Positions 18,682 to 64,000 are shown, counted from the stretch's first letter. The stretch is DNA of 64,000 nucleotides from Blepharisma stoltei ATCC 30299 (GCA_965603825.1 CBFDEM010000015.1:1-64000), one strand, 5' to 3'. Notes: generated by a model from the sequence alone, not told the origin. Translations and numbers: made by a program.

Positions 18682-19648
18682 ATGAGGAAAAATGGGTTTC
18701 GACGCCCTATCAACCCTTATCAAGTATCTAGCTGAGTCTTCACATTTCTCTTCACAGCAATCTTTTATATATTGATGCTCCCTGCGTTCCAAGTAGATCA
18801 GGCAGTTCTTATCGGCGCTGCTTTTAGCATGTTTTTAACCTTATTTTTAATGCTAGGATTTTTATGTACATATTCTGACCCAACAGATCCTGCAGTCATC
18901 CAAGGCTTACAAGCAAGAATAAAATCGTATAGTTCTATTCAGGATTTCAGTCGATGCTAAAAAGTATCCAAAAATTTGTAAACTGTGCAGGACCCATGTA
19001 AGTGCTGGCAGCAAACATTGCAGATTTTGCAATCGCTGTGTAAATGGATTTGACCACCATTGCAAGTGGCTGAATAATTGTATAGGCAAAAAAAATTACT
19101 CAACTTTCGCAAAACTTATCAGTGTCCTTGAAATCATTTTAATAATGATTGTCGGCACAGGCAGCGGTATATTAGCTGGAGTACTCGAAGATAAAGATAT
19201 CAAGCAGAATTTGATTCAAAATTTTAATTTCAGTGAGCTACTAATCAAGATCTACATTGCAATTATTTGTATTACTGTAATTATATGCGGGATTATTACT
19301 ATAGCTAACGCCCAGCTCATCTTACTGCACATTTGGCTCAACTATAAGGGGATGTCTACTTACGAGTATATATTAAAAAAGAGGAAAGCCAAAGCAAGCG
19401 TCTCAAGCGAAAACGCAGTCAAAGGATACTCACTAAATGAGATGTACGAGCCTTATGAAGAAAACCCTGAGTATTCAAAAGACCAAACAATGGTAGAAAA
19501 TAGCCAGGCACATCACAAACAAAACCTCTCGTTTGACTCTCAGTCTGAAGCAAATTTTGAAGAAAGTATGAAATTTGAGAAGAAATGTTTAACAGAAGCT
19601 AAAAATTCACTTGAGCACCATAGCGCGAACAGACTTGCTTCAGCGTAA
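18682..19648 (+). CDS. DHHC palmitoyltransferase, ZDHHC1/11-like (one TGA=Trp, one 16-nt intron)
   Basis: ATG at 18682 gives MRKNGFRRPINPYQVSS(W=TGA 18733)VF. Removing intron 18927-18942 joins it to CKLCRTHVSAGSKHCRFCNRCVNGFDHHCKWLNNCIG and onward to TAA at 19648. Confidence 0.9.
18927..18942 (+). other. 16-nt spliceosomal intron GTATAGTTCTATTCAG
   Basis: GT-AG ends and A at -6. Removal restores the frame between the TM region and the DHHC domain. Confidence 0.88.
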
Positions 19649-19659
19649 TAAATGTGTCA

Positions 19660-20610
19660 TTAATCACTGTCACTCCAATCTGAGCTCTCTTCTTCTAAGT
19701 CGTACTTTGTGAGTTCTGCCCTTCTTTCAGCGATTTTTGCAGCTAGGTAGTTAGTGAACACAACTTCGTCTTCGCTTCTTTCAGGCATTTCTTTCTGCAG
19801 GGTAGCTTTTCTGGCGTTTGACATATGCCTGATCAGCTCCATCTGTGCTTCATACAAAGTCTGCTTTCTTATGATTTCTTCAAACTGCTTGTCTTCTTCA
19901 TCAGGGATTATTTTGATTTCTGGCTGAGGCTCTTTGGATAATGATAAAGTCCTTGTGGCACTTCGAGATCTCACGATTTCTTCCATGATCACTGCAGCTG
20001 TTCTACTATCTCTAAGCTCACTTTTCCTGATTCCTGCATTTTTAAAGATTCTTTTTAGATCTTGAGACAGTTGATCCAGATTGAAGCATTTATTGGTTGA
20101 GTCTCATATAACTCTACCCATTAGTTGGACTGCATAGGGCTGGCTGATTTCGAAGTTTTCTTCTTCATTTTGCTGCTTTTTGGATTTTTTTGTGTTTTTT
20201 GATTTTGAGTCCTCAAACTTTTGGTTTTCAGGCTTGGGAGAAAAGGACCGGATTTTTTGTTTAAAACTTTCTGCTTCGTTTGGACTGCAAAAATAAATTC
20301 CTATCTGGCCGCCGGGTATAGGAAAGCAGAAAAATGACTGAGAAAGCTGGTCATAGAAGTTAAAAAAATCGTAATAAAGCTCTGTCTCAAAAATGAGGTC
20401 AAATGTGTTCAGATCATACATTCTCATTAATGTCGTCTGTAAAATTCTGTCGATTATCAAACAAATAGCCCCGTAAAGCCCCGAATCTCTTCATGACTGG
20501 TTTTTTCCATCATTTGCGTAGAGTTTTGCGCTGGCGGTTGCTATTAATGTGCACGTGCCTGCTATTTTTTCATTTAATTCTTTTATGATTTCTTCAGAAA
20601 TTGTTGACAT
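19660..20610 (-). CDS. WASP-like protein (WH1, GBD/CRIB-like, C-terminal CA), 316 aa, two TGA=Trp
   Basis: LIATASAKLY...QS(W=TGA 20491)RDSGLYGAICL...MRMYDL...FETELY matches WH1. ISQP...RVI(W=TGA 20104)DSTNKCFNLDQLSQDLKRIFKNAGI matches the WASP GBD. It ends LAAKIAERRAEL...EEESSDWSDSD, a central plus acidic-Trp motif. Confidence 0.8.
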
Positions 20611-21336
20611 TTTAATGAAATTAATTATTGGGATATGCAGCTGATATTATAATAGAAGTTTTTAATTGCAACTACTCTTATTTTCATCTTTCTTACTCCA
20701 TTATAAAGTTGATATTTTAATATTATCTAAGTGGCAATAGTTTATCAAGTATAAGATGCAATATTAATTATAGTTTGAATATTGAAATGACTAATTATTG
20801 ATATTTTCTAGTGATGACAATAACGTCTAATTGACTTAATTGAAAATATAATTTTTTAATATTTAATTATATATTGATGCTAATCAATTAGCAGCTAAAT
20901 TGTAGCACAGATAACAGCTTTTGAATTAATATATCGTCAATTTTATTTTTGAATTTCATATAAAAGTAATTTTATGAGTTATCATCTTATTGATTCTTTA
21001 TTTTTTTATCATGATTCTTTAAACTTCTAACTTATTTTATATTTTCTTTACTCTGACTCAATATCTTATGCATAAGTAAGAAGCAACTATCAGTTTTCTC
21101 TAAAATTAAGAAATAAATCTATGTCTATTAGCTAGTAACCTATATTAAATGAAAAAATCTTAATGTAGCGATATGCAATTTTTGTTTAAAAAAGCAATTT
21201 TCGATTTCATTTTATTAAAATTAAGCAATTATTCCTATTAAACCATTCCATCTTTTTTGAATTTGAAAGTTTCTTAAGGAGAAGGCGAAACCAGACGCAA
21301 CTCGTGATTTGGTGGCAAAGCCATATTAATAAATAA

Positions 21337-21348
21337 TTTAGCGGGAAA
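21337..21348 (+). promoter_or_regulatory. Candidate E2F site TTTAGCGGGAAA abutting the MCM3 start codon
   Basis: GCGGGAAA (reverse complement TTTCCCGC) in otherwise AT-rich flank. MCM genes are E2F targets in animals and plants. Confidence 0.35.
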
Positions 21349-23645: not shown

Positions 23646-23697
23646 CAAGGAATTTCATAATTAATTTTAAGGTAATACTCAGACTAATTATTTAAAA

Positions 23698-25527
23698 ATG
23701 AAGTTTTGGGTTTTCATCTTGGCGCTCTACTTTTCCAAAGCTTCCGAAAGCAATGATATTTCTTCAGACGAGGACCCTGGTACCTGTGTGTGCGATTTAA
23801 CGAAAAACTCCTGTGATGCCTTTTGCTGCTGTGACGACGATTGCACATCTGCTGTAATCCAGATGTGGGAAGGAACTGATTCAGACTCAAATATGTGTGT
23901 AAGGTCAAGGTTTGGCAATAGTGATCGGTTTTCTTGTATTGATGACTCGGAAGTCTACAAGATCAACTCGAGAAGAGGCTTGAAAAAGACTGATGATTCC
24001 AGCAATGATTTAATTTGTGTCACTGTTGATAATGCTCAGCCATTTGGCAGCTTTCATACACTAGTAAGTGAGGCATCTACAAGTAAGGCTACTGATAGGA
24101 TAGACTTAACAGTTGGCTACTCTGATGTAATCTACGCACCAAAGCCAACTTATTCGTGATATAGAGATTATCAAGTAGAAGTAAATGTCACGAGCAATGA
24201 AACGACGACAGGGGTAAAAACAATCACTCAGACCCAAACATTTGTATACTTAACTCCTGGGGTTGTGATGGGGTCAGAATATTCAGGATGGGCTCATTAT
24301 CATAATAGATGGACGATCCCTGGCCCTGACAGCTATGGGCTTTGCAATGATATGAACACAATTCAGTGGCTTTATAAGGCAAATCCTGGGCCATGCACAA
24401 GGGCTTATACAGGGAGCACTTTCCAATCAATTTGTGTATCAAGTCTAAGCATTGCCACCTATATGGATTATCTACAAATTGTCCCAGGAGCCACCAATGA
24501 GACCACAACTTCTATAAACTACTACCAAATATACAAGAGGGACACCTCCACCAATACCCAGACCCTGATTCCCATCACTACACTGACAACAACATTTGAT
24601 TCGACCAATTGTATTTGCAAGAATGCCTTTTTGGAAGCTCATTATACAGTATGGACTAACAATAAGCAAAATGCGACTGATCAGATTTATGCAACTGTGG
24701 TTATTGCAGATTTAAGCTTAAGCTCGTGCACTTCAACTGCTATTGGGAACGTTACTCAGCAATTTTCTGTGAAATTTTTAACCACATCTGGGCTTGAGCA
24801 GAAGAGATCTGGGAATCCTGGGTATGTAAAAGGCAAGCCTGTTTTAGCTGGGACTTTGTCTGATAAAGTGATTAGTCAGTTTGATGATGGAATTCAGCTT
24901 TATGGAGCCAGCTCAAAAGGGGCTTGCATTTCGTCATCATCAACTCCAGTAATGGGCGGCATACAAAGCCTGAATTTTGGGCAGGATGCTGTGTATTCTT
25001 GCTATTTAGAGTACACTTTAAGCCAGCTTGAGACTGCCTGCACTACTAGTAACTTGCAAATGAGCATTTTTTCATATCAAGATATTGCTTATATAGGAAT
25101 ATTTGGGGACGCCGATGCAAATACTCTTTCAGACTGGGTTGCAGTTAACACAGATGCGATGGCAAACCCAACTGCTGAATTCAATTCTACATCGAAAACC
25201 TGCAAATTGCCAAACTTGGTCAGTTATGACATTTTTTATACAGAAACAGGAGACTTGACTAACCCACAGCCAAAAATTGTTTATGTGAAAAAATCAGTAA
25301 AAAACAATCCATGGGAATTCAAAAAGCAGCAGTCAGGAGATACACAAATATTTTTAAATACAGTTGTGTTTAGCTTCATTGAGTATACCGAAAAATATGA
25401 TCCCTATGGAAGTCCTCCACTTGACCCTATCAAAGTGATGCCAGATGACGTGATTTACCCATTTAGATACTCTTCTGGGAGTTATTTCAATATATTTTTG
25501 GGAATATGCATTTGTTTAATAATTTAA
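23698..25527 (+). CDS. Tectonic (ciliary transition-zone protein), 609 aa, one TGA=Trp
   Basis: Signal peptide, CVCDLTKNSCDAFCCCDDDC, RSGNPGYVKGKPVLAG and a hydrophobic C-terminus. The two ORF pieces are in frame across TGA 24157-24159. Confidence 0.9.
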
Positions 25528-26428: not shown

Positions 26429-28079
26429 CTAGCTTTGAGTATGAGTTATACCTGACATTTCTTCAAGGACTTGGCTATTTCTTCTAATTGTAAGCCTTCT
26501 TTGAGACAACCTCTTAGCGGGTGGTCTTTCGAAAACTGCACTTTCATCATCTTCCGTATTATTAACAGTAATCTGTTCAGAAAAGCCTAAATAATTTTTA
26601 CAAGTCATAATTTCTTTGAATTGGCTGAAATCCATATACTCGTTAACCTGCAGTTTGAATTCCTCTATAATATCATTAAAATCATCATCTGATATAAAAC
26701 ACCCTGCTTTTTGCAGCGCATATTTTAAATTTTTAACAGTAATACGTCCCTTATTTTCAATATCAAAATGCTGGAAAATTGCTCACAAGCTTTCCTCATC
26801 CAAAAACCTCCTCCTATCCATTGCAGCGATCAAGAACTGTGTATAGTTTAATTTTCCCTTCCCTAGGTAGCTCATGCCCCTAATAATTAAATCAAACTCA
26901 TCCGCAGCTACATCATACCCGTTTCTCTTCATTGCCTGCACAATATCTTGAGGTGTCACAAAGCCTGTCTTTGATATATCAATTTCATCAAAAGCTGCGT
27001 GCAGATCCCCTAGCTGGTCTTCTGAGAGATTTCTGACTAGCACTTTCATAGCTTCTCTTCACAGCTTGCTTGGAGTTTTAAAGCTTTTAATTGAGTTAAA
27101 TACTTCAAGGTTTATCCGGGCACTCATATCTGCTGAAAAAGAGTTAAGCCACTCATGCTTCAATGCTTGGCTGATTGTAATTCTAAGCTCTGGGTTCAAT
27201 ACAAACATTTTGGCGATCAGATCTTTGGCAGACTCTGATATATTTTGCCATACTGAGTCGTCAAAATTATAGTCCGCAATCATGATTTTTCGGAATAAAT
27301 CGTTTATGTCCAGTCCTTTAAAAGGCTGCTTTCCTGACAATAGTAAATACATGAGCACTCCAAATGACCACACGTCACATTCTTTCCCATATTTTGATTT
27401 GAGGACTTCGGGGGCAAGATAATATGGAGTTCCCACCATAGTAGTCATTGCGTCATCTCCAAATTTAATGGACATCCCAAAATCTACCAGCTTTATTTCT
27501 GCGTTGGGCTCTGAGTTCACCAGCAAGCAGTTTTCAGGTTTTATATCTCTATGTGATATTTTTAGGCTATGCAGGTGGTTGACTGCCCCTAATAAGCTTT
27601 TCATTATTTGGGCTACTTCTGTTTCCAGAAGCGTCCCTTTACTAATTAAATAGTCAAGTAAATCCCCTCCTGTGCAGAGTTCCATGACCATATGTATATA
27701 TTTACTATCCTCAAAAATTTCATAAAGTTTTACTATATTGGGATGGTCCACTAGCTGAAGGATTTCTAGTTCTCTTTTGAGCATCCACAAACCTTTTTTT
27801 ATTTTTTCTTTACTGATTGATTTAATTGCATAATGCTTCCCTTTGAGCATTTCGCTTCGGTCGAAGATAGAGCGGTTGTTATTTTTAATTATTTTAACAG
27901 CCTCCCTTACAGTTCCAAACTGTCCATAGCCTATTATTTTTACGAACTCATAATATTTCCTAATACCTGTTTGGAAGATTACTTTCTAGACGAGTGCATG
28001 CAGAAATGTCTGAGTTTTCGATTGGTTGGCCGAGTTTAGGCACTCTTAGATGATGGTCAGAGACGCAGCACACTCCCAT
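26429..28079 (-). CDS. Calcium-dependent protein kinase (kinase plus EF-hands), 544 aa, one 16-nt intron, two TGA=Trp
   Basis: MGVCC start at 28079. After removing intron 27967-27982 it reads IGYGQFGTV, then HRDIKPEN, DFG, GTPYYLAPE, junction KL(W=TGA 27059)REAMKV, and EF-hands DISKTGFVT and SL(W=TGA 26783)AIFQHFDIENKGRIT. Confidence 0.92.
27967..27982 (-). other. 16-nt spliceosomal intron GTAATCTTCCAAACAG
   Basis: GT-AG ends and A at -6. Removal joins the MGVCC exon to the kinase Gly-loop frame; both frames are otherwise blocked by TAG. Confidence 0.88.
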
Positions 28080-29121: not shown

Positions 29122-30150
29122 TTAATTCAATATTATTTTTTCATCGCGATCCTTTAAATATTCATCTTGCTTAACTTCTTTAAACCTTGCATTGTTAAGT
29201 CTTGCTGAATATACATAAGATGGGACTCCAAAGATACAGCCTCCTCCCTGGTGAAGCATTCTTTTGTTATCCAGGAGTAGCAGCTGTGTCATATCAAGAG
29301 GAATCCAAAACCTGCTCATGTCCATAGCTTGCTCAAGCCTATCTATATGCGCAAAGTACTCATTTCCACAGAGCATTACTTCTCTTGACTCCCTAGAATA
29401 ATTAATTTCTCCGTTTTCTCCTAAATGTGGGTGCTCGCCGTAAAACATGAAATTGTCAGTTTTCAGTCTATAAGGGACTTTTGTGTTTTTTAAGTACTCG
29501 TAGGTTTCTGAGCCTTTTAGCTGCGAATGCACTCTAACGCCATCTATTACACCTACTCCAGTGTTTGCTTGTGTAATAGCTAAAACAGAAGGCACTTGCT
29601 CCATAAAGCATCCTTCGTTGTGGAAAAACTCATCACGAACAAAACAACCAGAATAAACCTGCACAAATAATTCTTTAGCGACTTCTTCCACTTGCTTTTC
29701 TTCAATTTTAGGGCCTTCAAATTGGATAATTGCGCCTCCTTTTCTTTGTATTTCAACCAAAATTGTATCAATTTTTTGTTTATCAAAGGTACTGCCTGAG
29801 CCTTTTTTTAGAAATTGTTCATCAAAATGGGAGACTCCTTGGAATGGCAATCTTTCTAGAGGTGGGAAAAAGCTCTTCCCGTGCGAAAGGTGGTAGAGGT
29901 ACTTTGATGGAAAATCGAAGGCAGCAGCATCTTCCCATATAATTTTTATGATTTGTTTTTCTCTGTCAAATAAAATGCCATCTACTCTGAAATTTGGCCA
30001 AAAAATATTTTTTTTGTGAAGAGTGCTTGATCTTCTCAGTCAGTCATAGGTAAAAAGAGTTGGTTTTCCAAATTCCCAGACACATTTGATTCCTGAAGGC
30101 TCCACGATGATGTCAATGATGTGATATTTTCTTATTAGAGCTTTCCACAT
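29122..30150 (-). CDS. Divergent gamma-butyrobetaine/trimethyllysine hydroxylase-like (TauD-fold) dioxygenase, 342 aa, one TGA=Trp
   Basis: ATG at 30150; FTYD(W=TGA 30040)LRR and IIWEDA resemble the GBBH N-terminal domain; FHNEG and LLLDNKRMLH resemble HxD/E...DNxRxLH. Confidence 0.65.
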
Positions 30151-31707: not shown

Positions 31708-34700
31708 TTACCAAACTGGCTTCTGGCACAGCAGTGCAACACCTCTCAGTTTCCACAAGTTTTGCTGTGGACTATCGCATCTCAGCTTGACATTGAAAAT
31801 GAAATATTTATCCGTTCGTTGCTTATACTTATAACAAGGACAGCTGTACATACCGAAATCTTCATAGTCTTTTCCTCCCTTAGTCTGTTTATCCTTAACT
31901 CTAGCTCCCACATAAATATTTGGCATATCCACATAAGTGTCTTTTCCAGTCAATTCTTCTAGTCTTCCTCCATCCTTGTTGTTATTCCACCTAGCTCCTT
32001 CCAAGAAGAGCCCTTTAATCAGGACTCCTTTTTCAGGGATATCTTTAGGCCTTTCTGATTTATCTCTGACTTCTGTCCTTTCTTCGACGTCGTCGAGAGC
32101 CCAGTTTTCGCTCTTCATTTGTCGGGTGACTTCTTGTTTGACTGCTGTTAAGAAGCCTTGAGGGTTGAAGAAGAAACCAAGGTTGTAAATTGGAGGTCTG
32201 CCGTCTTTCAACCAGTTTCCAAGTTGGGAGTTTCTGTCTTGGAGGCCACTGACCCAAGAGCCTAAAGTGGAGTCGAGCCATGAAATTTCACTTGCGTTGG
32301 CGTCGTACTGCCACTGCTTTGGCACTCTGGAGTCATAGATGGCGTCAGCTGCTTCTTGGAGTTCAGGGGTCAAGATAATATTACCAGCTCTGACTTCAAT
32401 TAAGTCATTAAGAGTCCTCCTTACGATTCCGATGACGTTTTGAAGCCTCATAATTTCTTGGAACAAGAAAATGTTAAGTGGGATCTTGAATCCGTTTTTC
32501 TCTTTATCAAGCCCTTTTGGCCCTGTAAGTCTTCTGACCATATCTCTGACGTCAGCTTCTATATAGTCTGCAGGCAGTTTAGAAAGATACTCCAATACAT
32601 ACTCATGCACAATATCATCTCTAGATTTGCCACTTGAAGCGTCACTTTCTTTAGGCTGCGTCATCTGGATTGTGGCTAAGACCTCGTTGCCTTCTCTTCT
32701 CCTAAATGTGATATCTGCGTTTTGGTTCAAAAAGAACAGGGATGGGCTTTCAAAGGCTGGAAGCATGCTGATTTGATCTCTGTATCTAGAAATTTCAGTG
32801 GAGTCAATCACTTTGTAAGAGTTATCACCAGTGCTGGGGCCTGAATTAAAGGAGAAACTGGTGCTCATAATACGCTCATCAATCCACTCAGCGCCAAATG
32901 CTTGGATTAGCTCAAAGTCTTTTTCATCAGTGATTCTACCTCCAAATTGGATGTCGCAGACCATAAATCTGACAATGTCCCAGTCTGGCTGGCTGTTTTG
33001 GGCCTCTTTTTGATTGACGTGGCGGTCTAAGAAAGTTAGAGAGGCTTCAAGATCAGAAGTGTTGAACTCGTAAGGGATGCACCAACCTAATGGACCGAAT
33101 TTTCTTCTTTCAATGATGACAGAATGCAGGAAGCAAATGGCGTAGGTTATTTTTCTCCATTTGTCAGTGTCGTGGCGTTCTAAGAAGTCTCCATCAATGG
33201 TGGTTGAAAAAGTCCTGGTAAGGCCAGCTTTAAGACCTTTAGGAGGCTCATCAGTAGCTTTGATAGCCATTTGCAGCAGTCCTATAGGGAAATTAGCTCT
33301 AGGCTCACAAGTAAGCCAAAGTCTGAAGTCGGGGTCAATTTCTTCTCCTTTGCCTAGTAAAGTTTCCATTCTTGCCATGAATTCTAAGCCCAAGTGACAG
33401 TTGTATAAGATGACCCAGCTTCCATTGAAAAAGCTTGCTTTCATAGCTTCTAATGCAATCACGTCTTGTCCTTCACCCATAGACACTTTTTCAATGTTAT
33501 GCTTGCGCTTCTTTTTGGCTAGATCTTCTATTTTGTTGGTAGGATCTGCACCCGGGGACAGCAAGTACAAGATGGGTACTCTGCAAGTACTTTCTTCTAA
33601 GATCTCTTCAATGCTATCAGCTACAGGCACCACAAAGTCTCTCCCTAGCATGCTTTCAATAAAGTCAATAGCACACATGCCGGTTCTGTCTTCTCTTAAA
33701 GACCTTACCAAAGTAAAGTGTATGAATTTGCCTATGCCTTGTTCAGACTCTATTGTTTCTCTATATTTCGGCACTGGTCGTTTTTCAGGAGTGTTATCGT
33801 CAAACCAAGCTTTCCACTCATTTTTCCTTTCTTCAATATCCTGAGGCAGATCGCTGAAAATGCACAAGTGCTCTTTTCCATAGTAATGTTTAGACAGCGC
33901 AATGACGTTTTTCCACACATCAATATCGAATAAATCAGAGCTCTTATTAGGAGGAATTGCGTTTTTATCAAGAGCTTTACCACCTTTCAGCAGCAAATCT
34001 ACATCAGTCTGTGTGAGTTTGCCACCGATGACTAAGATTTTCAGACAAATCATAAGTAGGAAGGTCAGCTTGTCCTTTTCAAAGAGACCTCTGTTAACGT
34101 ATCGGTAGGCGACATAGGTGAGCTTATTGGTGATATTTTTGACTCTGTCCTGGTTTGTGCTGGCTTTTTCAGCGATGTCGATACTTTCGTCGAATTTCTG
34201 CAAAAATTGGTTGAGGGAGGTGTTGTACATCCAGTTGACTGTACTCATTTCGACAATGCTGAAGTACAATAAGGAGCCTCTGGTGGCCACTGGCCTGTAA
34301 ATTTCTCTTTTCTCGTTGATATCGATCTGCTTTTCTTGGGCCTCGTCAAGTTTCACCTGGACTTCTTTAGCTTTGGCTTTGGTGTTGTTTAAGACCTCTA
34401 TAAGCTCAGTATCGTCAATAAGGTTTCCTTCGGTATTGGTCAGCCTTTCTAACAGGTTTTTGTTATATTGTTCAAGGGATTTAGCGTTTGCGGTGACTTC
34501 TTCAAGCAGCTGCTGCAATGATTCTTCTAGTGACCTCTGTTCTTTGCTGAGGACTCTTCCTAGAAGTTGTTGCTCAAGCCCACTAATAGTGACAGTGAAA
34601 TCAATGATGGTAGTTTTAGCAGCAAGCTCAGGCGAGAAGTGAGGATTTCCAAGCCTAGAAGTCATGAAAAGTTTGAACTCATCGTCCCACTCGATGCTTT

Positions 34701-48232: not shown

Positions 48233-50086
48233 TTAATTATTACATCTAGCGTCATTCCCAATAAGGCTAATATACTTCATAATTAATTCAACACACTCAT
48301 TTGGGGTATTTTCATTGGAAATTACTAAACGCAAAGGCTGCTTGTCTTTTACGAAGAAAAATGTCACCCTATTTTTCTGCTTCGTTTTTGAGGTCACTCT
48401 GATTAAGTCTGTAATTTTTATGCGTGTTTGGACGTTTCTTTCTGATTTCCTTTCAGAATTTTTAAATAAAATAAGCTCGTCTCTAGCGACGAGGAATGAA
48501 AAAATTTCTTCAGAAAAAGACTTGGTAGACTTATCATAATTTTTGCAGGAAAAGTACCGAATTTCGTCTCATTTTTGTGAGTTTTGCTCTATGGCGATTG
48601 TTCGCCGTTTATTTGTGTCGTCACCGCTGGCGGCAAAGGAATTCTTGATAGTTTTTACTGCTGTTGACAAAAAGTGGGCTTTATTTCTGACTGCTTTTTT
48701 GATTTTTTTGATTTTTTCTCTAATTTTTGATGGAGATCTTGTATAGATACAATAAGGACAATTAGAATTCTTATGGTTATCGATCTTTAGGCTATATTTC
48801 ATACAAAGATTATGGCATTCTTTGAAGCCTCCCTCTATAATGCTTACGTGAGGGAAGCCTTTGGATATAAAGATTTCTAATAGGTTTTCCATCATTATCT
48901 GACACTGGTCATTAGATATTGAAGCTCCATGCTCCATTTCAAAGCCTGAGCCTTGGAATTCCTTATCTCCTAATAAAAAAATATGATAAATTCCTCTAAG
49001 TTCCACATAGTTGTCAGGGATTTCATTTAAAATTTCTTCATCCTCATATATTTTTGTATCAATTGAGGCAGAATTCGGGAAAATCCCATGTTTTTGCTGA
49101 GCTTTTGGTCGGCAATCTAATAAAAGAATAGGTGTTTTATATGTTTCTTCTTTGCAAACACATTGAAATTCAGCACAGCTGCAAGTCTTTTTTTCTGGAA
49201 AAATTACTTCTAGTACATCTCTAGGGGTAGCAGTAAGGCAATATTGATTTGACAGCACATCAAGGGTGCTATTAATTGTTTCCAAGTTAAAAATATCAAT
49301 TGACGCTAATTTCTGCCTTATGGAAAACGGCATATTATTTTTGAGTTTTTTCGCAATTTGAATTATTTTTTCATAGTCTTCGTTATTCTCTAGCATAATT
49401 TGGGAAATGCTTTGCTGTATGATATTGTCCTTGTTAACCATTATCTGTGCTTTAAAGTGAATCAAGAACGCTATCCCTACATAGCAAGGGAAAAGCCTAT
49501 CATTCTCAACAATCATCTCCTCCCAGACTTTATAAATAATCTCGAAATTCGAAATCTTGCCTGCAAAAGCCGTCAGAAATCAAGACGTCGCAAAAAACTC
49601 AGGCGAAATTGAATTAGTCTGAAAAAAATTGCTGATCCAAGGCTCATGATACCTTAAAAGCAGCTTAAATATCACAAAAAATCCTTGCAGAGGCCGAAAA
49701 CTCTATATAAGCTTTACTTTATCTACAAACATCGTAGGTAGAAATCAATTGACGAATTTTTTGAAATAAGTATAAACCATATACAAAGGTATCCCCTGTC
49801 TATGCAAAATCAAGAACGGCGCCATAATTTCATTCATCCCTTGCTTATATGATGTTTTTTCTTCTTTGCAGAACTTCGTTAGCAGGATTTCTAGATTCGT
49901 TTTTTCTTCATTTGTCAAAATCTTTGATCTGGTTCTTTCTGAGTCAGTTTTAATTATACGCTGATTAGGCAAATCAAGTTCTGCTTCAATTGTGAACTCT
50001 TCAATAGCTTCTGGACAGAGTAATAGCTAAATATAGCCTACCAGAAAATTTTCAACATTAAACTGGGGAGAATTCTCTTCTTCCAT
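48233..50086 (-). CDS. TBC1D23-like protein (TBC, rhodanese, PH-like C-terminus), 607 aa, two 15-nt introns, three TGA=Trp
   Basis: IIKTDSERTR, YKQGMNEIMAPF, LLLRYHEP, PEFFATS(W=TGA 49580)FLTAFA, LLDCRP and GFPHVSIIEGGF. Other TGA codons at 49745 and 48569; ends TAA at 48233. Confidence 0.85.
49703..49717 (-). other. 15-nt spliceosomal intron GTAAAGCTTATATAG
   Basis: GT-AG ends and A at -6; removes an in-frame TAG from the middle of the TBC domain. Confidence 0.9.
50027..50041 (-). other. 15-nt spliceosomal intron GTAGGCTATATTTAG
   Basis: GT-AG ends and A at -6; removes an in-frame TAG and links ATG 50086 to the TBC domain. Confidence 0.85.
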
Positions 50087-50119
50087 TTATAACTTATACA
50101 CTTAAAAATACTACCAAAT

Positions 50120-51031
50120 TTATTGAGCTTCTTCAGGGATTTCTTCATATTCTCTCCACAATTTTTTGAATTCTTCACTTATCCTTATTAATTCTTCATC
50201 ATTATGTTTTCTATTCCTAAACATTGGGTCGACCCTTAATATTTCACCAATAATTTGTCTTGAAAAATTTCCCCGAAAATAATTAGAATCTTCAACCACA
50301 TGGGCAAACCCTCCATTTCCGTCAAAATCAATATGAATATAAGGGAATCCTTTGGGTATTGACTTTCTGATCCCTTTTACACTAGTTGGGATGATTTTTT
50401 TATTTTGTGTCCATTCTTCGTCACCTTCACTTAATTCTCTATAAATAATCATTTCTGCGTCTTCTCGAGCTTGAGGGTCAAGTGGGAAGCATTCAATGTA
50501 GGTATGAAGGCACCTTCTGAGGTCAATCACATTTTCCACAAAAATTGCAGTTTTGCCGAGCTCATCTCTGTACATTTTTGATATATCTTTTTGGAGATCT
50601 TGAAGCTCTTGGTACTCATTAGATTCCATCTCAGTAATAGATAAAGTATGGGCGTTTGGGACTAGTAAACAGTGGCCTTTTGATAAATAGCCTGATGAAG
50701 GGATTTCGATATGAAAAGAGCCTCTTATAGAAACAAGCAATTTACTATTGAAATTTTGGCTGTCTATGCAGTGGTCACAATTTTGGTTAGTCTTTTTTGT
50801 TAGACGCTTATAGGTGTCAAGTTTTTCTGCTTTAATTTGAGATTCTGTGATTTCGTATTCTTCGTCTTTGTTTTTCCTTATGTTTCTTATTAGGTGTTCA
50901 TTATAATCTTCGCTTGTAGCTATTTTCTCATTTTTTCTGATTTCGTTTAGTCCGATTTGGCTTTTCTTTTCCTCTTCTTTTGTTTTTTCCTCTTCTTTTG
51001 TCTTTTTCTTATATTTTATCCCTGCTAGCAT
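50120..51031 (-). CDS. CwfJ-domain spliceosomal protein (Cwf19/CWF19L2-like)
   Basis: CDHC, GHCLLVP..H, HTYIECFP, EEWTQNKKII and IPKGFPYIHIDF...GGFAHVVED motifs. Confidence 0.88.
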   Translation of the reverse strand: MLAGIKYKKKTKEEEKTKEEEKKSQIGLNEIRKNEKIATSEDYNEHLIRNIRKNKDEEYEITESQIKAEKLDTYKRLTKKTNQNCDHCIDSQNFNSKLLVSIRGSFHIEIPSSGYLSKGHCLLVPNAHTLSITEMESNEYQELQDLQKDISKMYRDELGKTAIFVENVIDLRRCLHTYIECFPLDPQAREDAEMIIYRELSEGDEEWTQNKKIIPTSVKGIRKSIPKGFPYIHIDFDGNGGFAHVVEDSNYFRGNFSRQIIGEILRVDPMFRNRKHNDEELIRISEEFKKLWREYEEIPEEAQ

Positions 51032-51123
51032 TTATTTAATATCTTATTTATTGTACCTTGTATGATTCATTTTTAACCCTATTAATACATTAATTTCCTA
51101 GCAATTATTTTTATCCTCTAGGC

Positions 51124-52137
51124 TTAAAATGGCTCAGCATCAATAACTTCTTCTAAATTCTTCAAAAAACCACGATTATAAATATTCGGCTGATTCAATA
51201 AATGTGCTTTTTTGTCGTCAATCTGCAAGTCCAGCCTTTTCATCCTTTCATTTGATGTCGTATTATTTTTCACCAGCAGCAAGTGGTATAGGAAAAAGCC
51301 TCCCAGTAAAATTCCTACAACAAGGCACAAGCTTTCAGCGAAAAATAACTTTTGGTGCTCTTGTATCAAATATTGAAAAACCACAATCCAGCTGCCTGAT
51401 ACCCTATTTCCTTCTCTATCTGTAAAAACTGTGGTAAAAAGTCTTTCTGAAAGAGTTATATATGCAAATATCATAAATCCGATCATAGACGCATATAAGC
51501 AGATAACACTGTGTGACAATAGAAAAGCCAGGAAAAATTTGTAATTGCCGTAGCCTACACATTGGTTTATCCAGACACAATGATGATCCATTTTTGGAAC
51601 GCAGCCTTCGCACACTGAGCAATGTTTAGATCTGGCCGGCTTTTGGAGTTTGCAGGTAGTGCAAGAGTTCTCTTTAAATAAAATGTTGTCATATGGGAAT
51701 AAGCTTAAATATTTTTTGTAGTTATTTTGGGTGACTTTTCCTGGAGATTTCCAACAGGCTGCAAAAAAGGTGCATAAAGCCAGTAAGTACATTATAGAGC
51801 CAAGATACATGTGAATAGCTGGAACTAGAGGATTTGGGATAAAAGGGAAAGCTTGAGCGTAGAAAATGTAATAGCCGCCTAAGCTTAATGATAAATAAGT
51901 TAGCTGGAAAAAGGGATTTGGACGATTAAATATGTAAAGAGCATAATAGGAAATTTTTGATTTCCCCATAGGTCCTAAAATTTTAAGAGAGATTCTGTCA
52001 AAAAATGCAGGAAGCTTGACGTAAAAAAATCTGCTTAAGTATGAGAGAGGGCCAGTTCCATGAGGGTTTACACAGAGAAGGACAAATAAGAATGACACTG
52101 AAATGACCATATAGATTGAAAAAAGCCAGAACCCCAT
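51124..52137 (-). CDS. DHHC palmitoyltransferase (SWF1/ZDHHC4-like)
   Basis: CTTCKLQKPARSKHCSVCEGCVPKMDHHCVWINQCVG, TTSNERMK and NIYNRGF..NL. Confidence 0.92.
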   Translation of the reverse strand: MGFWLFSIYMVISVSFLFVLLCVNPHGTGPLSYLSRFFYVKLPAFFDRISLKILGPMGKSKISYYALYIFNRPNPFFQLTYLSLSLGGYYIFYAQAFPFIPNPLVPAIHMYLGSIMYLLALCTFFAACWKSPGKVTQNNYKKYLSLFPYDNILFKENSCTTCKLQKPARSKHCSVCEGCVPKMDHHCVWINQCVGYGNYKFFLAFLLSHSVICLYASMIGFMIFAYITLSERLFTTVFTDREGNRVSGSWIVVFQYLIQEHQKLFFAESLCLVVGILLGGFFLYHLLLVKNNTTSNERMKRLDLQIDDKKAHLLNQPNIYNRGFLKNLEEVIDAEPF

Positions 52138-52226
52138 ATTAGTTTATCATTCCTTTAGATTAGGAATTTTAACCATTTTAATCTTAATTAAGTTGAAGAG
52201 GAAACAAATTTTGGGGGTGTTATAAA

Positions 52227-53114
52227 ATGTCTAAATTATTCAATGAAATGAAATTCTTTATGCTCCAAGGCCCAGAAATAGAAGCAACTTCGAAGATTAT
52301 CATAGCTTATGGAGGTCAAATGTCGTCAACTGTAAATAAAGACTCCATTGTCCTTGTGACCTGCAGAAAAACCCATATAATTAAGGTTACCAAAGCTCTT
52401 GGGTTTAACGTGTTTTCGGCGAGCTTTATTTATGATTCAGTAAAGCAAGCAAGCCGCCAGCAGTTAAGTGACTATCAAATTGTGGTTGAAGCGTCAAAAG
52501 ATTTTCACTTTAAGGATTTTAAATTTTCACAGCAAGATATTCAAAATATCAATAATTATATAAGGCTAAACACAGGCAACCCAGATTCTGATAGCTATTG
52601 ATTTGTAGCGCTATATAATGGGCTTGATGTTCCTTATAGCTCTGAAGTTTTATATGAGTACTACTGCTCTAACATAGCTTTGAATTTAGAGACATATGCG
52701 ACTAACGACGAATCAACAAGTTCAGAAAGAAACGAAGATGCTGACGTTTATTATATTGGCAGAAAAAGACGCTGCTTAGAAGATTTATCTCAAAACTCCA
52801 TAGCAACCTGCTTACAAATATCCATCTTAAATCAAAATCCCACGAAAAAGCAAAATATCCAGCCAGCTTTTAACAATTCTCCAAGGCATCTCGTTATAGC
52901 AGTCAATTCCTCTGAAAGAAGTGTATATGATTTAAAAGACATTGAGAAAAAATCCAAAGAAATAAATATTACTGAAGAGTTTGAGGAATTTTACAGCAAA
53001 TGCAAGTCAATAGTCAATGAAAATTTATCTAAAAGTGAAGTGTTAGGCATTTTAACAAAATTTAATGGTGACATTGAGAAAGCTCTGAATTATTATCAAA
53101 CAGATGTTGTATAA
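52227..53114 (+). CDS. BRCT plus Myb-like plus C-terminal helical protein, Rap1/TERF2IP-like, 295 aa, one TGA=Trp
   Basis: IIIAYGGQ...SASFIYDSVK..RQQLSDYQI (BRCT); FSQQDIQNINNYIRLNTGNPDSDSY(W=TGA 52599)...YSSEVLYEYY (Rap1-type Myb); LSKSEVLGILTKFNGDIEKALNYY (RCT/UBA-like). The pieces are in frame. The CDS is solid; the orthology is inferred. Confidence 0.6.
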
Positions 53115-53149
53115 TTTAATTTAAAATCGCTTCAATTGTTAATTTTTAA

Positions 53150-54349
53150 ATGGGAAATGTATGCTGCATGGGAAGAACAGGCCACACACCGCAAAATAAT
53201 GAAAACAGCATGATAAAGGATAGTGAATTTCATAACAAAAAGAAGAGCGACCATCGCAGATCATTCGAACAAAGCGACTCCCGTAGAGAATCCAAACGGA
53301 TTTCATCCCCAAAAAACTCAAAACCTGCTGTGCAGTGGCAAAATTTATTTAGCCAGCATTCAGAAAACAAAAAATCAGAAGAAAATACTGCAAAAATCCA
53401 GAAGCCGATTCTTGCAAGCAAATTAGAAAAAATTGAAGAAGAAAGAAAATCAATTGAGGATAACTACAAAAGCGACTTATATGAGACACAAGGATTTTTA
53501 ATTGACTATGACCTAGAAGAAGCCACAAACTATACAAAAAGCGATCAGAGAAAAATAATCCAAATTTTAGACAATTATCAAGAAGAGTTAGAAGATGGAG
53601 ATATAGAAGAATTGGACGGGCTGATTGAAGATGCCAATATGAATGGCGTATTAATTACAATGATGTTTACAACACATGCTATATATATACTAAATTCTGA
53701 GGAATGGTCAAGTGTTACTAGAAGAGTGCCATTTGAATCAATAAAAGCTATGAGTCTTGCGGCTAAAGGACTTTCTGTGCTCTTTCATATAGAGCCAGAG
53801 GACGGGAAATATAATGATATTTTGATAAGTAGCGAGAGGTATAATGATATCATTAAAGCTACAGAACAGCTTTATTATGAATGTACAGGAGATTATGTAC
53901 AATGGAATGTAGCTGAATCAAAAAATGATTTATTCACGTTTTTGAATAAGCCAATTAATAAAGAATTCACAAGCGAGGATAAAAATTTGACAAAAGTTTT
54001 TGTGAGATATGGAGAAATTGGAGAGAAAAAGCTAAAACTTCAGCTGTGCTCGACGTCATCTGAATCATTTGAATTTGACAAATATTTTTTATTGACAAAC
54101 AAAGGTATTTATATATTAAAAAAAGATTTTGGGATGATTGATAAAGTGTTTTTAGAAAATATACGAAAAATTGGCAAAGATTCAGTACAGAGATCAATTA
54201 TTGTGTATGATGTAGATAAATCGTTCTATTTTAAGCTTCCGTTGGTGATAGCAGATGATATACAAGAAGCTGCGCTTGCAGTAGGAAATTCGAAGATAAA
54301 AGAACTTGACCTTGACTCGGAGTCTTATTTAAGTGTTACTAATAATTAA
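53150..54349 (+). CDS. Hypothetical acylated protein (MGNVCC) with two PH-like segments
   Basis: N-terminal myristoyl/palmitoyl motif; MMFTTHAIYIL...RRVPFESI and FLLTNKGIYIL...KVFLENI resemble PH/TH1-like folds. Confidence 0.6.
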   Translation: MGNVCCMGRTGHTPQNNENSMIKDSEFHNKKKSDHRRSFEQSDSRRESKRISSPKNSKPAVQWQNLFSQHSENKKSEENTAKIQKPILASKLEKIEEERKSIEDNYKSDLYETQGFLIDYDLEEATNYTKSDQRKIIQILDNYQEELEDGDIEELDGLIEDANMNGVLITMMFTTHAIYILNSEEWSSVTRRVPFESIKAMSLAAKGLSVLFHIEPEDGKYNDILISSERYNDIIKATEQLYYECTGDYVQWNVAESKNDLFTFLNKPINKEFTSEDKNLTKVFVRYGEIGEKKLKLQLCSTSSESFEFDKYFLLTNKGIYILKKDFGMIDKVFLENIRKIGKDSVQRSIIVYDVDKSFYFKLPLVIADDIQEAALAVGNSKIKELDLDSESYLSVTNN

Positions 54350-54455
54350 TCTAAGTGCATCGATAGATTTTAATAATTAATATCTACTTCTACTTAGAAA
54401 ATTAAGCTTAACTTATCTCAGTATAATTTTAGAAATCCATAGAGGGAATAAATAA

Positions 54456-56513
54456 ATGGAGCGCACTCAGGTAATTAAAGAAATGCTTGGAATTTCCCAA
54501 AATCACGAGTCAATCGACACAAAAGTCCACAAAGTTGACGAAGAAACACCATTCCACGAAATTTTGTCCCAAAATCTGCACAAGCTTCAAGGCGAAAACA
54601 TAATAGAAAATGCTGTTGGGGCTATTCAGTCTAATTCTCAGCTTACAGCTTTTACAAGGGATAATCAATTATTTTTATTAAAAGACAGAAATAAAGAAAA
54701 AGAGGAATCCCCTTGTAAGACCCATTCATCAACAATTATCTCAATGTCTTTATCAATCTCCAATAAGCTTGCATCATTAAGCAGTACTTTCGAACTGTTT
54801 ATAGGAGTAGTTTCAGATGGTGAGTATTCTTTTTTACAGAGTTTTGAAGGTCTTGAATATCAGCCTAAGAGGATAATCTGGGATCCTCTAGATGATAATA
54901 TGCTGTACCTTATTTCAGAAAGAAATATCTATACTTTTGAGACTCTGTCAGGAGAAATAAAGGTTTTGTATTCTACAGAGGAAGAAATTGCTGGATTTCA
55001 TATAAATCCAAGTGGTAGGAATTACACAGCTCTCCTTTCTTCGAAAAAAGCAATTTTAGTGTCTTTTGATGGCTATACAGAAATTCCATATGAAAATATT
55101 GATGAAATCTGCTATATAAAAACTGAGAGCTTGGCTATTTATTGTCTTCAAGAAAATAAGCTTCATATCTGGAATATTTCACAGCAAAGAGAACTCTGCT
55201 CAGCACACTGCACACTATCAGACCCAATTCTCAAGCACTGTGAGGATTCTGACCAAATATTCGCATTCAGCCAAAAACGGCAAAAATTGATTATTTTTAC
55301 TTTTGACGAAGAAGATAATATAGTATCCAGCCTCCAAATTAGACTGCAAAATTCTTTCCAAGACATCAATATTGTCTTCCACTATAATACAATTGCAGGC
55401 CAGCCTCCAGCTAAAGGAAACAGTCGAATAGAAATTATTACTTTAGGGGATGATAAAGTTACTAGCTATATAATTTGGTCAGAACAGTCAAAAAAAATTG
55501 GGGAAAAATACATTCTATTTTCAGACAATATTGAGGAAAATAAAGAAGATCAAAATTTTCATACCCCTGTGAAATATGTAAAAAGTGAAGAAATTAAATG
55601 GGCAAGAAAACAGATGCTGGAAAATCAATATGAAGTAAAATTTATAGAAAAAGCTAATAAAAATGACGAAAGTAAGGCTAAGATTGACAATAAGAAAAAA
55701 CTTGAAATCTGCCAGGTAATAAGTTTTGATATACTTCCTTCAAAACCTATAGAAAATTTCTGTTGAGAAGTAAAAAGCTCTGGGGTTATGACAGAAATCA
55801 ATTCTCAGCAGCTTTCAGAAAGCCTAGAAAAAAACTATCAGTCAATGCTTAAAAATATGCATGAATTAGTCTCAGAAAGCCGCATAAAAAGCATAATTTC
55901 TTCTGCAGTCGATGCAAGTATCCCTAAACTTATAGAAAATTACATAATGAGAGTTGTTACCAAAGTTATGGAAGAAATTACCCCACTTGCAACAGAGCTA
56001 ATCAAACAAGAAATGGCAGCAATTCGGCAATATGCGGAAAACTCTTTTATTGAAATAATAGAAGAGCAAAGGACCCATGAAATGAAGCTGCAATCCATAG
56101 AAAAGCATCTCTATGAAGAATACAAAAAAAGAGAAAAAAATTTTAAAGAAAAAAAAATAATCAAAAATATTCCAAAGTATGAGGAAGAATTTGAGAAAAA
56201 AAATTACGAAAGAGGCATAATTGAGCTGCTGGCGACCAAAGATCTGCAATTAATTTCTAGCAAGCTTGCAACACTAAATCCTGAAGTAGTTTTCAGCACC
56301 CCGCTTGCATATGATACTTATTTTGACTTGTGCTTTGTGTTGATTGATTTAATGAAAGCTGGAAAATTTGAGTGCAGCAATTTAATGGAAAAACTATGCC
56401 AAATAATTCCTCTAAATGGTACACAAAGACGAAAGCAGCTTTTCAGAGTATTTCTTGACCGAAATAACCATTTAGAAAGATTTGAAGAAATCATCCATAA
56501 TCGAATGCTATAA
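54456..56513 (+). CDS. WD40-like N-terminus plus helical C-terminus, possibly EDC4/Ge-1/VARICOSE-like, one TGA=Trp
   Basis: Two ORFs in frame across TGA 55764-55766. Beta-propeller-like N-terminal half; the C-terminal NYERGIIELLATKDLQLISSKLATLNPEVVFSTPL resembles the EDC4 C-terminal domain. Confidence 0.55.
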
Positions 56514-56531: not shown

Positions 56532-57566
56532 TTATTCAATTAGCACGTTTTTCTCGAATTTTCCTTCTTTAACACCTCTTTTGTCAGGGAATGAAATTTT
56601 TCCCATTCCCTGTTGGACCCCTTCTGCCCATTGTCCTTCATAAACAGTCCCATCATTCCATTTCATCATTCCTTTTCCATGTCTTAAATCATTTAAAAAC
56701 TCCCCACGATACTCATTCCTTGATGCCCAAACAAAGCATCCTATTCCAGATTTTTTGTCATTTTTGAAATTTCCTATATATTTATGGCCTTCTTTTAAAA
56801 AAATTATTCCAATTCCATCCTTTTGGCCGTCAACAAAATTTCCTTGATAAAAGGTGTTTTTGCTGTAAATGTATTTTCCATACCCATTTGGTTTACCGTC
56901 CACGAAATTTCCTATATATTTTCCTCCAGTTTCAGCATAATGAGCCATACCTTTACCATTTGGGATAAAATCTTTCCATTCTCCTTCATATGAGTTTCCA
57001 TTGGAATAAACATGTTTTCCCCATCCATTTGCTTTTGAATTTACCCAATCGCCAATATAGCTTTCATTATTAAATCCAAACCACATTCCTTTGCCTTCTT
57101 GCTGGCCTTCTACCCAATCTCCTTCATAAGTTTCTCCAGTGCTTCAAAATAATTTTCCTTTTCCATTAGCTTTCCCGTCGAAAAATTCTCCTACGTATTT
57201 ATTTCCATTTAAATAATACTCGATTCCATTGCCTTGGCGTCTATCATTTCTCCATTCTCCGAAATACCATCTTCCAGAATGGTAGAGCATTCTTCCTAGT
57301 CCATGCCTTTTACCATTAAAAATGCTTCCTTCGTATATGCTGTCATTATATTTTATGCTGGCTTCAAGGTCAAGTTGGTTTCTTTCTTCTTCAGTTAAAT
57401 TTTCCTTATATTCGCTTTTAATTTTATCTTCAAAATAATCACAGTCAAAAATAATTTCTTCAAGTTTTTTCGATTTAATTTTTACTATTGCTTTTTCATT
57501 ATCTTCCACAAATTTCTTGATTTCCTCCAGTTTTTGATCTGACATAAACTCTTCCCACTCAACCAT
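56532..57566 (-). CDS. MORN-repeat protein, one TGA=Trp
   Basis: Tandem YEGEW..G...G.G repeats; GKGKLF(W=TGA 57144)STGETYEGDW fits the repeat consensus. Confidence 0.92.
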
Positions 57567-61171: not shown

Positions 61172-61468
61172 TTTGAAATTAAATTTATAAATATGGGAAA
61201 ATGAAATAGAAGACATCAGATTTTATATTAATTGTAATAAAAATATAAATAATTTTGGATAAAATGCATTTAAATGCTTAATAAAATTGCAAGCTAATGA
61301 AGATGATAAATAATTTTTGTGTATTCAAAACAAATAAAATTCAATTGATTAGTTTAAACGAATTCAATAGTAATTTTGTAGTATATAACTATAGGGCTCT
61401 GTCTTCTAAAACCTAATTCTATTTTATTTTATCTTTTATAGTTTCATATATTCCTAACATTAATAAAT

Positions 61469-63184
61469 ATGAATGCTTCGATTTCATCACTAAGTTTTTC
61501 TGCATTAGAAAGGAAATACTATGTGGCTGAATTCGATAGATTGACAGAAAAGCAAGAAAATTCTATAATTGACAGAACTTTATCAAGGGAAGAATACATG
61601 AATTTCTTGAAAAGATTGAAAATTTCAAGAACAGATTGCGATGATATCTGAAATTTAGTAAATGAAAACCAAAATGTATTAAAATTGCCAAATTTTATGG
61701 CAGCTATGAGATTGTGTAGTGTTTTGAAGCAAGGATTACGAGTTGGAAAGGAAAATTTAATTAAGGAACAAAGCGTTTTAGCAAGAAAATCTAAAGATAA
61801 AGATACAAAAAATACTGAAGATTCAAAGCCAGGAGGAATGCCAAATAAAAAGACTGAGAATGGGAAGGGTAAAAACACTAATGATAGGCTGAGTGACATA
61901 CCAGCTATGCAAGAAACTGCTCAAAATATTTTACCCAAGATGCCAGCATTGCCTGATGATAAGAAATTTCCTGCGTTTGAAAAACCAATTGAAAATATTT
62001 ATACTGGGAATAAGTCACCATTAAAAAACTTTGAAGAAAAAACCCCAACTCCTGCTTTAACTGAAAAATCGATATTCCAGGCACCTTTAAACCTAATCAA
62101 TGTTCCAGAGCCTTCAGCATTTAACAAGCGAGAAATCTCAGTAGAAACTCCAACACAGGTGATCAGTGGGTGGTTTGGGAGTTCATCATATCACACTTAT
62201 CCGATCATCACACAAATAAATGACCAAATTTATAGAGTAACTAGAAGATTCAGCGACTTAGATTGAATGCATAACTTATTAGTCAAAAATTATTGCGGAT
62301 TCCTTATACCTCCACGACCGGATAAAAGAATTATTAACAATAACAATGACAAGTTTATTGAAGAGCGAAGATTGCAGATTGAAAAATACTTAAACATTAT
62401 TTTAAATAACCCAGTATTAGGCATGTCACTCCCATTTAAAGTTTTTACACAAGCCCGTGATGAAAACTTCGAAATTGAAAAAAAATCAGCAGAAGATCGT
62501 CAAGAAAATCTTCAAGCTAAAAGTTTTGAAGATATAATTGACAGCGTTTATGCAAAATTCCAAACAAATTATCAAAAATTATTTACTGATATTCCTATAA
62601 AAGAAGACATTGAAAATATAGTAGAAAATATAATAAAGCTGGATTCTCCTACACAGTCTTGTATTAATTCTTTTCAAAATTGGACAAATCAGCAGAAATT
62701 GACGATAGATGCATTTCGCGAATTCGAAATCCCAGAAGAGCCAGATATTTCTGATATTTTTCAGCAGCATTCAAAGAACTGCCAACAGAATTTCGAAGAG
62801 CTTGACCAATTTCATTCAGATTTTTCTAATGAACATTTACGATTGGAAGGGTTAAAACAAGCGATAAATTCATATAAAGGATCAATTAGTAAATATCATG
62901 AGCAAGAAGCTTTAATTTCAAGAAAATATGCAAAGCATAAGAATTCATATGACGAAGAAACAGCGTCAAGATATTTACAAGAACTGGAATCTGCTGAAAT
63001 AGATTTGGAAAAATTAACTAAGTCATTGAGTAAAATAGAAAGCAATTTAATTCAAGAAAACATGAGATTTGAAGCAACAAGGAGTGAAGAAATTATGAAA
63101 ACTGTTATTGGGATTACTAAAAAGCAAAGAGAATTTTATGAAAAAGAATGTGTATTTTGGCAAAATGCCCTTGAAAAATTTTAA
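61469..63184 (+). CDS. Sorting nexin with N-terminal EH-like domain, PX and BAR, 571 aa, two TGA=Trp
   Basis: DCDDI(W=TGA 61649)NLV...NFMAAMRL (EH-like); VTRRFSDLD(W=TGA 62264)MH...IPPRPDK...FIEERR (PX); helical BAR-like tail. All three ORF pieces are in frame. Confidence 0.85.
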
Positions 63185-63362
63185 AATAAATATCCGCGTC
63201 AAAAATTAATTTAGACCATTAATCTCCTTTTAAGTTTCCACGTATAGATAATAAAATGGGATTATAATTATTTATACTCTAAATTATATCATAAAATTAA
63301 TAATAAATTTATATGAAATACCAATTAATATTTTCTATAAAATTCTACCTTATATAATCTCA

Positions 63363-64000
63363 TTAAATTAATCCTAACTTTGTTGATGCAATTAAAGATG
63401 ACAAAAATTGTTCAATTGAAGACCCTCCCGTTCCTTTTTGATCTTTCCCTTGCCCAGGTGCTAAAACATAATGATAAGCAAGCTTTAAATGAGCCTCTCT
63501 AAGTTTACATATTTTTTCTATTGCATTATTCCATTCTTCTACTGCTCCAAGCTCTATTATTTTTTCTTTCATATCCCTAGGCCTTATCGTTCCAATATAG
63601 CTTATAAAATTCCTATGCTCAGTTTTCATATAATTTCACATTTTCTGAATAAATTCATCATTTTTATTTAAATTAAATACTTCATCTATATATTTCACTA
63701 TAGGAATTTGAGCAGCTGAAGCCCCTGCATAAATTTCTGAATTCTCACTAACCCCTTCAAAAATGACTCCTGTTTCAAATGATTTCAACTTTTTCCGAAA
63801 TCCAAAATAAAATATTTTTGGGTCAACCTTTTGATAAATTAGCTTAAATGTTTTTGTCATTATTTCTATTGTGTCCTTAAATGCATCTAAAGCTTCAATA
63901 ACCTGAAATTTATTGCTATTTTCTAGCCCTGAATAAAGCTTATAGCATGCATCTATAAGTGGAGTTCCAAGATACTCAATATACATAGGAGTCAAATAAA
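63363..64000 (-). CDS. Indoleamine 2,3-dioxygenase (5' part outside the window), one TGA=Trp
   Basis: DPKIFYFGFR, YAGASAAQ, FIQKM(W=TGA 63636)NYMKTEHRNFI, heme-ligand His in LREAHL and GTGGS. Confidence 0.88.

Follow-up and report, generated by a model that had tools for sequence, protein, structure and literature searches.

Tryptophan as the very probable reading of in-frame UGA codons at a telomeric contig end attributed to Blepharisma stoltei

The stretch of DNA considered here, hereafter the window, is the first 64 kb (64,000 nucleotides) of contig 15 (CBFDEM010000015.1:1-64000) of an assembly deposited as Blepharisma stoltei ATCC 30299 (GCA_965603825.1), and our subject is the meaning of the codon UGA in its genes. 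An earlier note, made from the sequence of the window, had listed 17 in-frame TGA codons in 12 genes and proposed that UGA encodes Trp throughout. The analysis combined profile and homologue searches, public sequencing runs and scans of the whole assembly (41,464,486 b, 64 contigs); protein searches were carried out piece by piece between TGAs, rather than with spliced or read-through proteins. The genes and features that bear on the question, with their TGA codons and the evidence for each, are as follows.

1-956, no strand: telomere at the contig end, the 8-nt unit CCCTAACA repeated about 119.5 times, with a few variant units (repeat count)
3749-17287, minus strand: HYDIN/ASH-like gene, 4512 codons, intron-poor (profile match)
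18682-19648, plus strand: DHHC palmitoyltransferase, TGA 18733 lying 17 codons past the first ATG (PF01529, 2.7e-30 on 18923-19648)
19660-20610, minus strand: WH1-domain gene, TGA 20491 and 20104 (Pfam)
23698-25527, plus strand: Tectonic/DUF1619 gene, TGA 24157 between its two domains (Pfam)
26429-27850, minus strand: calcium-dependent protein kinase (Pkinase and EF-hands), TGA 27059 and 26783, ending in TAG (Pfam)
29122-30150, minus strand: gene with no Pfam match, TGA 30040 followed by 305 open codons (open frame)
31708-45510, minus strand: axonemal dynein heavy chain, 4600 codons, intron-poor, with one TGA, 35011, at AAA_9 position 3 in E-W-N-L-Q-G-L-P (Pfam, structures, paralogues)
48233-50086, minus strand: TBC (RabGAP) and rhodanese gene, 607 codons, TGA 49745, 49580 and 48569 (Pfam, RNA)
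49703-49717, minus strand: 15-nt intron GTA...TAG that holds the sole in-frame TAG of the TBC match (missing from RNA contigs)
50027-50041, minus strand: 15-nt intron GTA...TAG (missing from RNA contigs)
52227-53114, plus strand: BRCT-domain gene, TGA 52599, identical in an RNA contig (Pfam, RNA)
54456-56513, plus strand: gene with no Pfam match, TGA 55764 followed by 248 open codons (open frame)
56532-57566, minus strand: MORN-repeat gene, TGA 57144 in an aromatic repeat column (Pfam)
61469-63184, plus strand: EH and PX gene, TGA 61649 (EH I-W) and 62264 (PX RRFSDLD-W) (Pfam, homologues)
63363-64000, minus strand: indoleamine 2,3-dioxygenase, running past the window edge, TGA 63636 (IDO profile)

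The first gene frame begins about 150 b past the telomere array. The 4512-codon frame at 3749-17287 was also considered as a second dynein and rejected: it gave no alignment to dynein and is HYDIN/ASH-like instead.

When checked in the window sequence, TGA stands on the coding strand at all 17 of the listed coordinates, and our own tally likewise gave 17 in 12 genes, reproducing both positions and count. All 17 lie inside frames bounded by TAA or TAG alone, and UGA makes up 0.09% of the in-frame codons of the window. The further claim that each TGA is followed by an open continuation was also upheld, with two sites that needed explaining. At 15 of the 17 sites, another 90-1100 codons follow without a TAA or TAG; at 49745, a 15-nt intron carrying a TAG lies 13 codons downstream and is spliced out according to the RNA, while at 18733 there are 74 open codons and then a change of frame ahead of the DHHC domain, which is probably an intron. 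With TAA plus TAG taken at about 4.3% of codons, as in the off-frames, the joint probability that all these continuations are open by chance is about 1e-91. Moreover, Pfam domains extend across or resume after the TGAs (WH1, tectonic, Pkinase with EF-hands, RabGAP-TBC, BRCT, PX, IDO, MORN and dynein AAA_9). The RabGAP-TBC profile is matched up to position 168-169 by the piece before TGA 49580; the PX profile picks up at position 22, one residue past TGA 62264; and the AAA_9 profile picks up at position 4, directly past TGA 35011. The IDO profile is covered over 157-280 before TGA 63636 and over 298-363 after it, the WH1 match (35-108) starts six residues past TGA 20491, and the EF-hands carry on past both kinase TGAs (27059 and 26783).

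Genes of the window end, by direct observation, in TAA (22 frames) or TAG (4), so that TGA is required as a terminator in none of the 26; the earlier statements that no recognizable gene here ends in TGA and that TAA and TAG act as stops both hold within the window. No in-frame TAA or TAG occurs in about 18,000 codons outside introns. The two giant frames, of 4512 and 4600 codons, contain none, against hundreds in their off-frames, and the dynein and the Tetrahymena chain have C termini no more than 2-4 residues apart. No in-frame TGA was found within the last 90 codons before the TAA or TAG stop of any gene (26 genes, on contigs without transcript 3' ends). About two would be expected there, and the observed zero is not significant for this number of genes. 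It agrees with, though by itself does not significantly support, the published depletion of UGA in the 25-30 codons ahead of stops (bioRxiv 10.1101/2023.10.09.561518).

Four public sequencing runs were compared with the window over 48400-54399. In contigs from two of them, X8 and X9, 15 nt are missing at 49703 and again at 50027, whereas the DNA runs retain both; because these 15-nt introns are missing there and present in the DNA runs, X8 and X9 are RNA. The X8 sequence is identical to the window, with no other letters, over 48400-50073 and 52352-53673, and therefore the UGAs at 48569, 49580, 49745 and 52599 are unedited in spliced mRNA, a direct observation. DNA contigs of several runs agree with the TGAs of the window, although some of these runs perhaps derive from the same source sample. 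In transcript contigs of a relative with about 91-92% nucleotide identity (L076 and L077), TGA is kept at 49580, 48569, 61649 and 62264, that is, at four of the five sites compared.

Which amino acid is inserted was addressed through homologues, most fully for the dynein. On solved dyneins, the pieces on either side of TGA 35011 leave exactly one residue uncovered: they stop at 3502 and restart at 3504 on Tetrahymena 7kek_A, and stop at 3575 and restart at 3577 on human DNAH5 (8j07_n0). The skipped residue, placed by way of a dynein paralogue of the same genome that has TGG at this position, is Trp in Chlamydomonas (8glv_Fm, residue 3101) and in human DNAH6 (8j07_g5, residue 3051). At this column, the 20 other paralogues in the genome have TGG 17 times, TGA twice and ACA once. 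Pooling covered 21 heavy-chain paralogues of the assembly, including that of the window, with about 1100 codons of each aligned. Their 26 TGA codons occupy 17 alignment columns, and the other sequences have Trp opposite them in 168 of 324 cells (52%), compared with a background of 1.4%; Cys occupies 3 of the 324 (1%). One paralogue, L023 (G000:C41:609953-613396), uses TGA seven times and TGG five times over 790 aligned codons, and is the one with Thr (ACA) where the column of TGA 35011 is Trp in all the others; this dynein copy may be decaying or evolving fast.

Trp positions were likewise seen directly to carry TGA outside the dyneins. The EH site at 61649 (I-W) is TGG in a homologue from another public assembly (L073), and the PX site at 62264 (RRFSDLD-W) is TGG in the homologue L072/P0003 and Trp in P0006, while TGA 62264 is retained in L073, L074, L075 and L077. 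The reverse swap also occurs, a TGG of the window (in S-G-W-F-G-S) being TGA in L073. Judged from these alignments, exchange between TGA and TGG in both directions at conserved Trp positions is the behaviour of synonymous codons. Similarly, in two of the three eRF1 paralogues described below, the codon of the invariant N-terminal Trp is itself TGA. UGA thus appears where paralogues and homologues have TGG or Trp, as the earlier note had proposed. Its description of many sites as invariant for Trp survived in part: it stands for the dynein, EH and PX sites, and fails for the MORN site at 57144, where the corresponding column in the nine other repeats of the protein is aromatic in the main (Tyr in four, Trp in two, and Phe, Leu and Gly in one each), and for 49745, which is TTA (Leu) in the relative of about 92% identity.

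The same behaviour is seen across the assembly. The 91 matches to the TBC domain contain 119 in-frame TGAs, distributed over 67 of the matches, compared with 20 TAA or TAG codons; this evidence consists of stop counts rather than of alignments of individual loci. Eight solid PiggyBac-type loci contain 1-4 TGAs per match. The scans also showed full-length 18S rRNA genes at 12 or more dispersed places on 11 contigs (L001-L003, for example), and not in one rDNA unit.

The earlier note had suggested looking for variant tRNA-Trp genes, with either a UCA anticodon or a shortened anticodon stem, and for substitutions in eRF1. The shortened stem was found. A pattern scan of the assembly turned up identical tRNA-Trp(CCA) genes, no fewer than six of them: contig C4 has three, and C14, C44 and C46 have a single copy each. 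Their anticodon stem has 4 bp, with A27 opposite C43 (ARAGORN; e.g. L028:1488-1561, minus strand). The C4 trio is in tandem inside 2 kb (G000:C4:914610-916617, L028-L030), spaced by about 0.8 and 1.2 kb. A further tRNA-like gene, at L054:1489-1560 (minus strand; G000:C33, near 56.6 kb), has an 8-nt anticodon loop (uucca; called 'Gly|Trp') and a badly paired anticodon stem according to ARAGORN, and is perhaps a degenerate tRNA, perhaps one of the tRNA-like sequences of the preprint that describes the tRNA-Trp genes of this genus. According to that preprint, Blepharisma has no nuclear tRNA-Trp(UCA); its tRNA-Trp(CCA) genes have an anticodon stem of 4 bp instead, as in the mechanism proposed by Kachale et al. 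for near-cognate reading of UGA (bioRxiv 10.1101/2023.10.09.561518). Of the two variants suggested earlier, the signature to expect is the tRNA-Trp(CCA) with the short stem rather than a tRNA-Trp(UCA).

The eRF1 substitutions were found as well. Three paralogues, 61-72% identical, lie on three contigs (L056 on G000:C11, L057 on G000:C37 and L058 on G000:C28), and at yeast position 67 they have Ala, Ala and Ser; a fourth match of the search is Pelota-like. The main eRF1, L056, has NIKS, RIVRQ-A and Ala67 and contains no TGA, and the two SIKS paralogues (one with Ala67, the other with Ser67) each have TGA at the invariant N-terminal Trp of E-Q-W-K. For Blepharisma, three eRF1 paralogues of 60-72% identity with Ala67 or Ser67 have been reported, and B. 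japonicum eRF1 recognizes UGA weakly in vitro (10.1101/2023.10.09.561518). Genome and literature together suggest a scheme in which the ordinary tRNA-Trp(CCA) would decode UGA: the A27:C43 mismatch would shorten the anticodon stem to 4 bp and make near-cognate UGA readable, and the main eRF1, with Ala67, would, on the literature, recognize UGA only weakly.

Collectively, our results support the view that the window is almost certainly the telomeric end of a B. stoltei macronuclear contig in which nuclear UGA is read as Trp and UAA and UAG are the sole stops. Several points weigh on the other side. A direct match to Trp or TGG in homologues exists for three of the 17 sites (35011, 61649 and 62264), and the remaining 14 sites in the window rest on open frames, domain continuity, presence in mRNA and behaviour across the genome. 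TGA 18733 is the least secure, since a start at an ATG further downstream would place it in the 5' leader. A tRNA-Trp(UCA), the other variant suggested earlier, was not found, in a narrow test: none of 22 matches to a single UCA-type anticodon-loop/T-loop pattern was a tRNA by ARAGORN. Among the piecewise searches, a word search with the WH1 piece gave no match, leaving 20491 and 20104 without a tie to Trp in distant homologues; one with the TBC/rhodanese piece gave only the truncated open reading frame (ORF) of one close relative, with the same outcome for 49580 and 49745; and a search of solved structures with the kinase EF-hand pieces gave only generic calmodulin-type matches, uninformative on 27059 and 26783.

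Rival readings differ in which part of this view they deny. An ambiguous code of the Condylostoma or karyorelict type, in which UGA is Trp inside genes and also a stop near some 3' ends, draws on the published depletion of UGA ahead of stops and the weak recognition of UGA by eRF1 in vitro (10.1101/2023.10.09.561518), and the empty stretch before the stops of the window fits such avoidance. However, that zero is not significant, every one of the 26 frames ends in TAA or TAG without needing TGA, TAA and TAG are not sense codons here, unlike in the Condylostoma and karyorelict codes, and the authors of the genome report translation of UGA only; we regard such an ambiguous code as distinctly unlikely. 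The organism might also be another heterotrich, for which the reassignment would then be new. The best match to the main PiggyBac gene lies on C44, not on the Contig_49 of the published account, a discrepancy in its favour, and contig numbers are therefore of no use for checking identity; the CCCTAACA telomere, the 15-nt introns, the eRF1 trio with Ala, Ala and Ser at position 67, the tRNA-Trp with its 4-bp stem and the approximately eight PiggyBac loci all match the B. stoltei papers. Attribution to a different heterotrich is thus very improbable, and the earlier assignment to Blepharisma or a relative narrows, by these matching features, to B. stoltei.

Euplotes reads UGA as Cys, selenoproteins have Sec at UGA, and open frames alone do not specify the inserted amino acid. 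Here the predominance of Trp and near absence of Cys opposite the dynein TGAs excludes both, and the EH, PX and eRF1 sites exchange with TGG. In addition, TGA is much too common for Sec, occurring 17 times in 12 unrelated genes and 119 times in 91 TBC domains, at Trp columns (no search for SECIS elements was made). A reading as Cys or Sec is accordingly of almost negligible probability. Equally improbable in the extreme is that the TGAs are true stops, whether in pseudogenes, through sequencing errors, before RNA editing to UGG or with programmed read-through. Standard-code gene callers do split these genes, and public ORFs of relatives begin at the first Met past the TGA, as true stops would have it. 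Nevertheless, the RNA contigs show the same unedited TGA as the DNA contigs of several runs; the relative of about 92% identity keeps TGA at most of the compared sites; and the open continuations have a vanishing chance expectation, with domains carrying on past the TGAs.

With UGA read as Trp, its use within the genome is uneven. TGA accounts for 1 of the 103 Trp codons of the two giant genes (HYDIN-like and dynein, about 9,100 codons together) compared with 15 of 87 in the other genes of the window, an avoidance with an odds ratio of 0.047 (p=7e-5). Other codon pairs ending in A or G are much less uneven, with odds ratios of 0.83-0.91 (AAA/AAG, GAA/GAG, CAA/CAG and AGA/AGG) and 0.50 (TTA/TTG). 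In addition, TGA is absent from the main eRF1 and present, at an invariant Trp, in both of its divergent paralogues. Across the dynein paralogues, the TGA share of Trp codons ranges from 0/20 up to 7/12, and this wide spread implies that expression or constraint, not length alone, may drive avoidance. We tentatively suggest, giving the idea somewhat less than an even chance, that UGA-Trp codons are under graded selection within the genome. Such selection would be expected if near-cognate reading of UGA were still in competition with eRF1, each UGA then bringing a termination cost that weighs most on genes of great length or high expression. The differing TGA share among genes is a small, testable lead on residual competition between eRF1 and tRNA. 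There is also a practical side. Public ORFs of relatives (P0001, P0002, P0004, P0005, P0007 and P0008; L073-L077) begin at the first Met past a TGA in frame, in some cases under the label 'complete'. Gene calling with the standard code breaks up the database proteins of this lineage, and annotation of this genome, or database searches with it, requires a table in which UGA is Trp.

The window can be set against several known codes. That of Euplotes does not match, with Cys in 3 and Trp in 168 of the 324 cells opposite TGA. NCBI transl_table 15, the 'Blepharisma nuclear code', has UAG as Gln, and finds no support here: TAG ends 4 of the 26 frames, and the sole in-frame TAG seen within a domain belongs to a 15-nt intron that is spliced out. 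Stentor coeruleus, also a heterotrich, shares introns of 15-16 nt, and its telomere is CCCTAACA as well. In contrast, UGA is a stop in S. coeruleus, and its tRNA-Trp genes are of the 5-bp-stem type only (10.1101/2023.10.09.561518). Condylostoma magnum and the karyorelicts (UAR as Gln, UGA as Trp or stop) are alike in having UGA as Trp via a tRNA-Trp(CCA) with a 4-bp stem; the difference is that TAA and TAG are never sense in the window and TGA is needed as a terminator in none of its frames. The trypanosomatid Blastocrithidia nonstop has the same proposed mechanism, a shortened tRNA-Trp(CCA) stem together with eRF1 Ser67 (Kachale et al. 2023, per 10.1101/2023.10.09.561518), but its lineage is unrelated and has reassigned UAA and UAG too.

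The closest counterpart is the Blepharisma code in the literature on B. japonicum and B. stoltei ATCC 30299 (NCBI transl_table 4), from which no difference was found in the window. For B. stoltei, a genome of 41 Mbp in 64 telomere-to-telomere contigs, with CCCTAACA telomeres, 15/16-bp introns and UGA as Trp, has been described (PMC9942806), and the UGA frequency in B. japonicum is 0.13% (10.1101/2022.04.12.488043), compared with 0.09% in the window. The reading of UGA as Trp in Blepharisma, this genome and the mechanism based on the 4-bp-stem tRNA-Trp are all already published, and the change of code is not new, because the organism is Blepharisma itself. The window, with its assembly, and the published code have in common UGA at Trp positions, TAA and TAG as the stops that end genes, a low frequency of UGA, a tRNA-Trp(CCA) whose anticodon stem has 4 bp, and three eRF1 paralogues.

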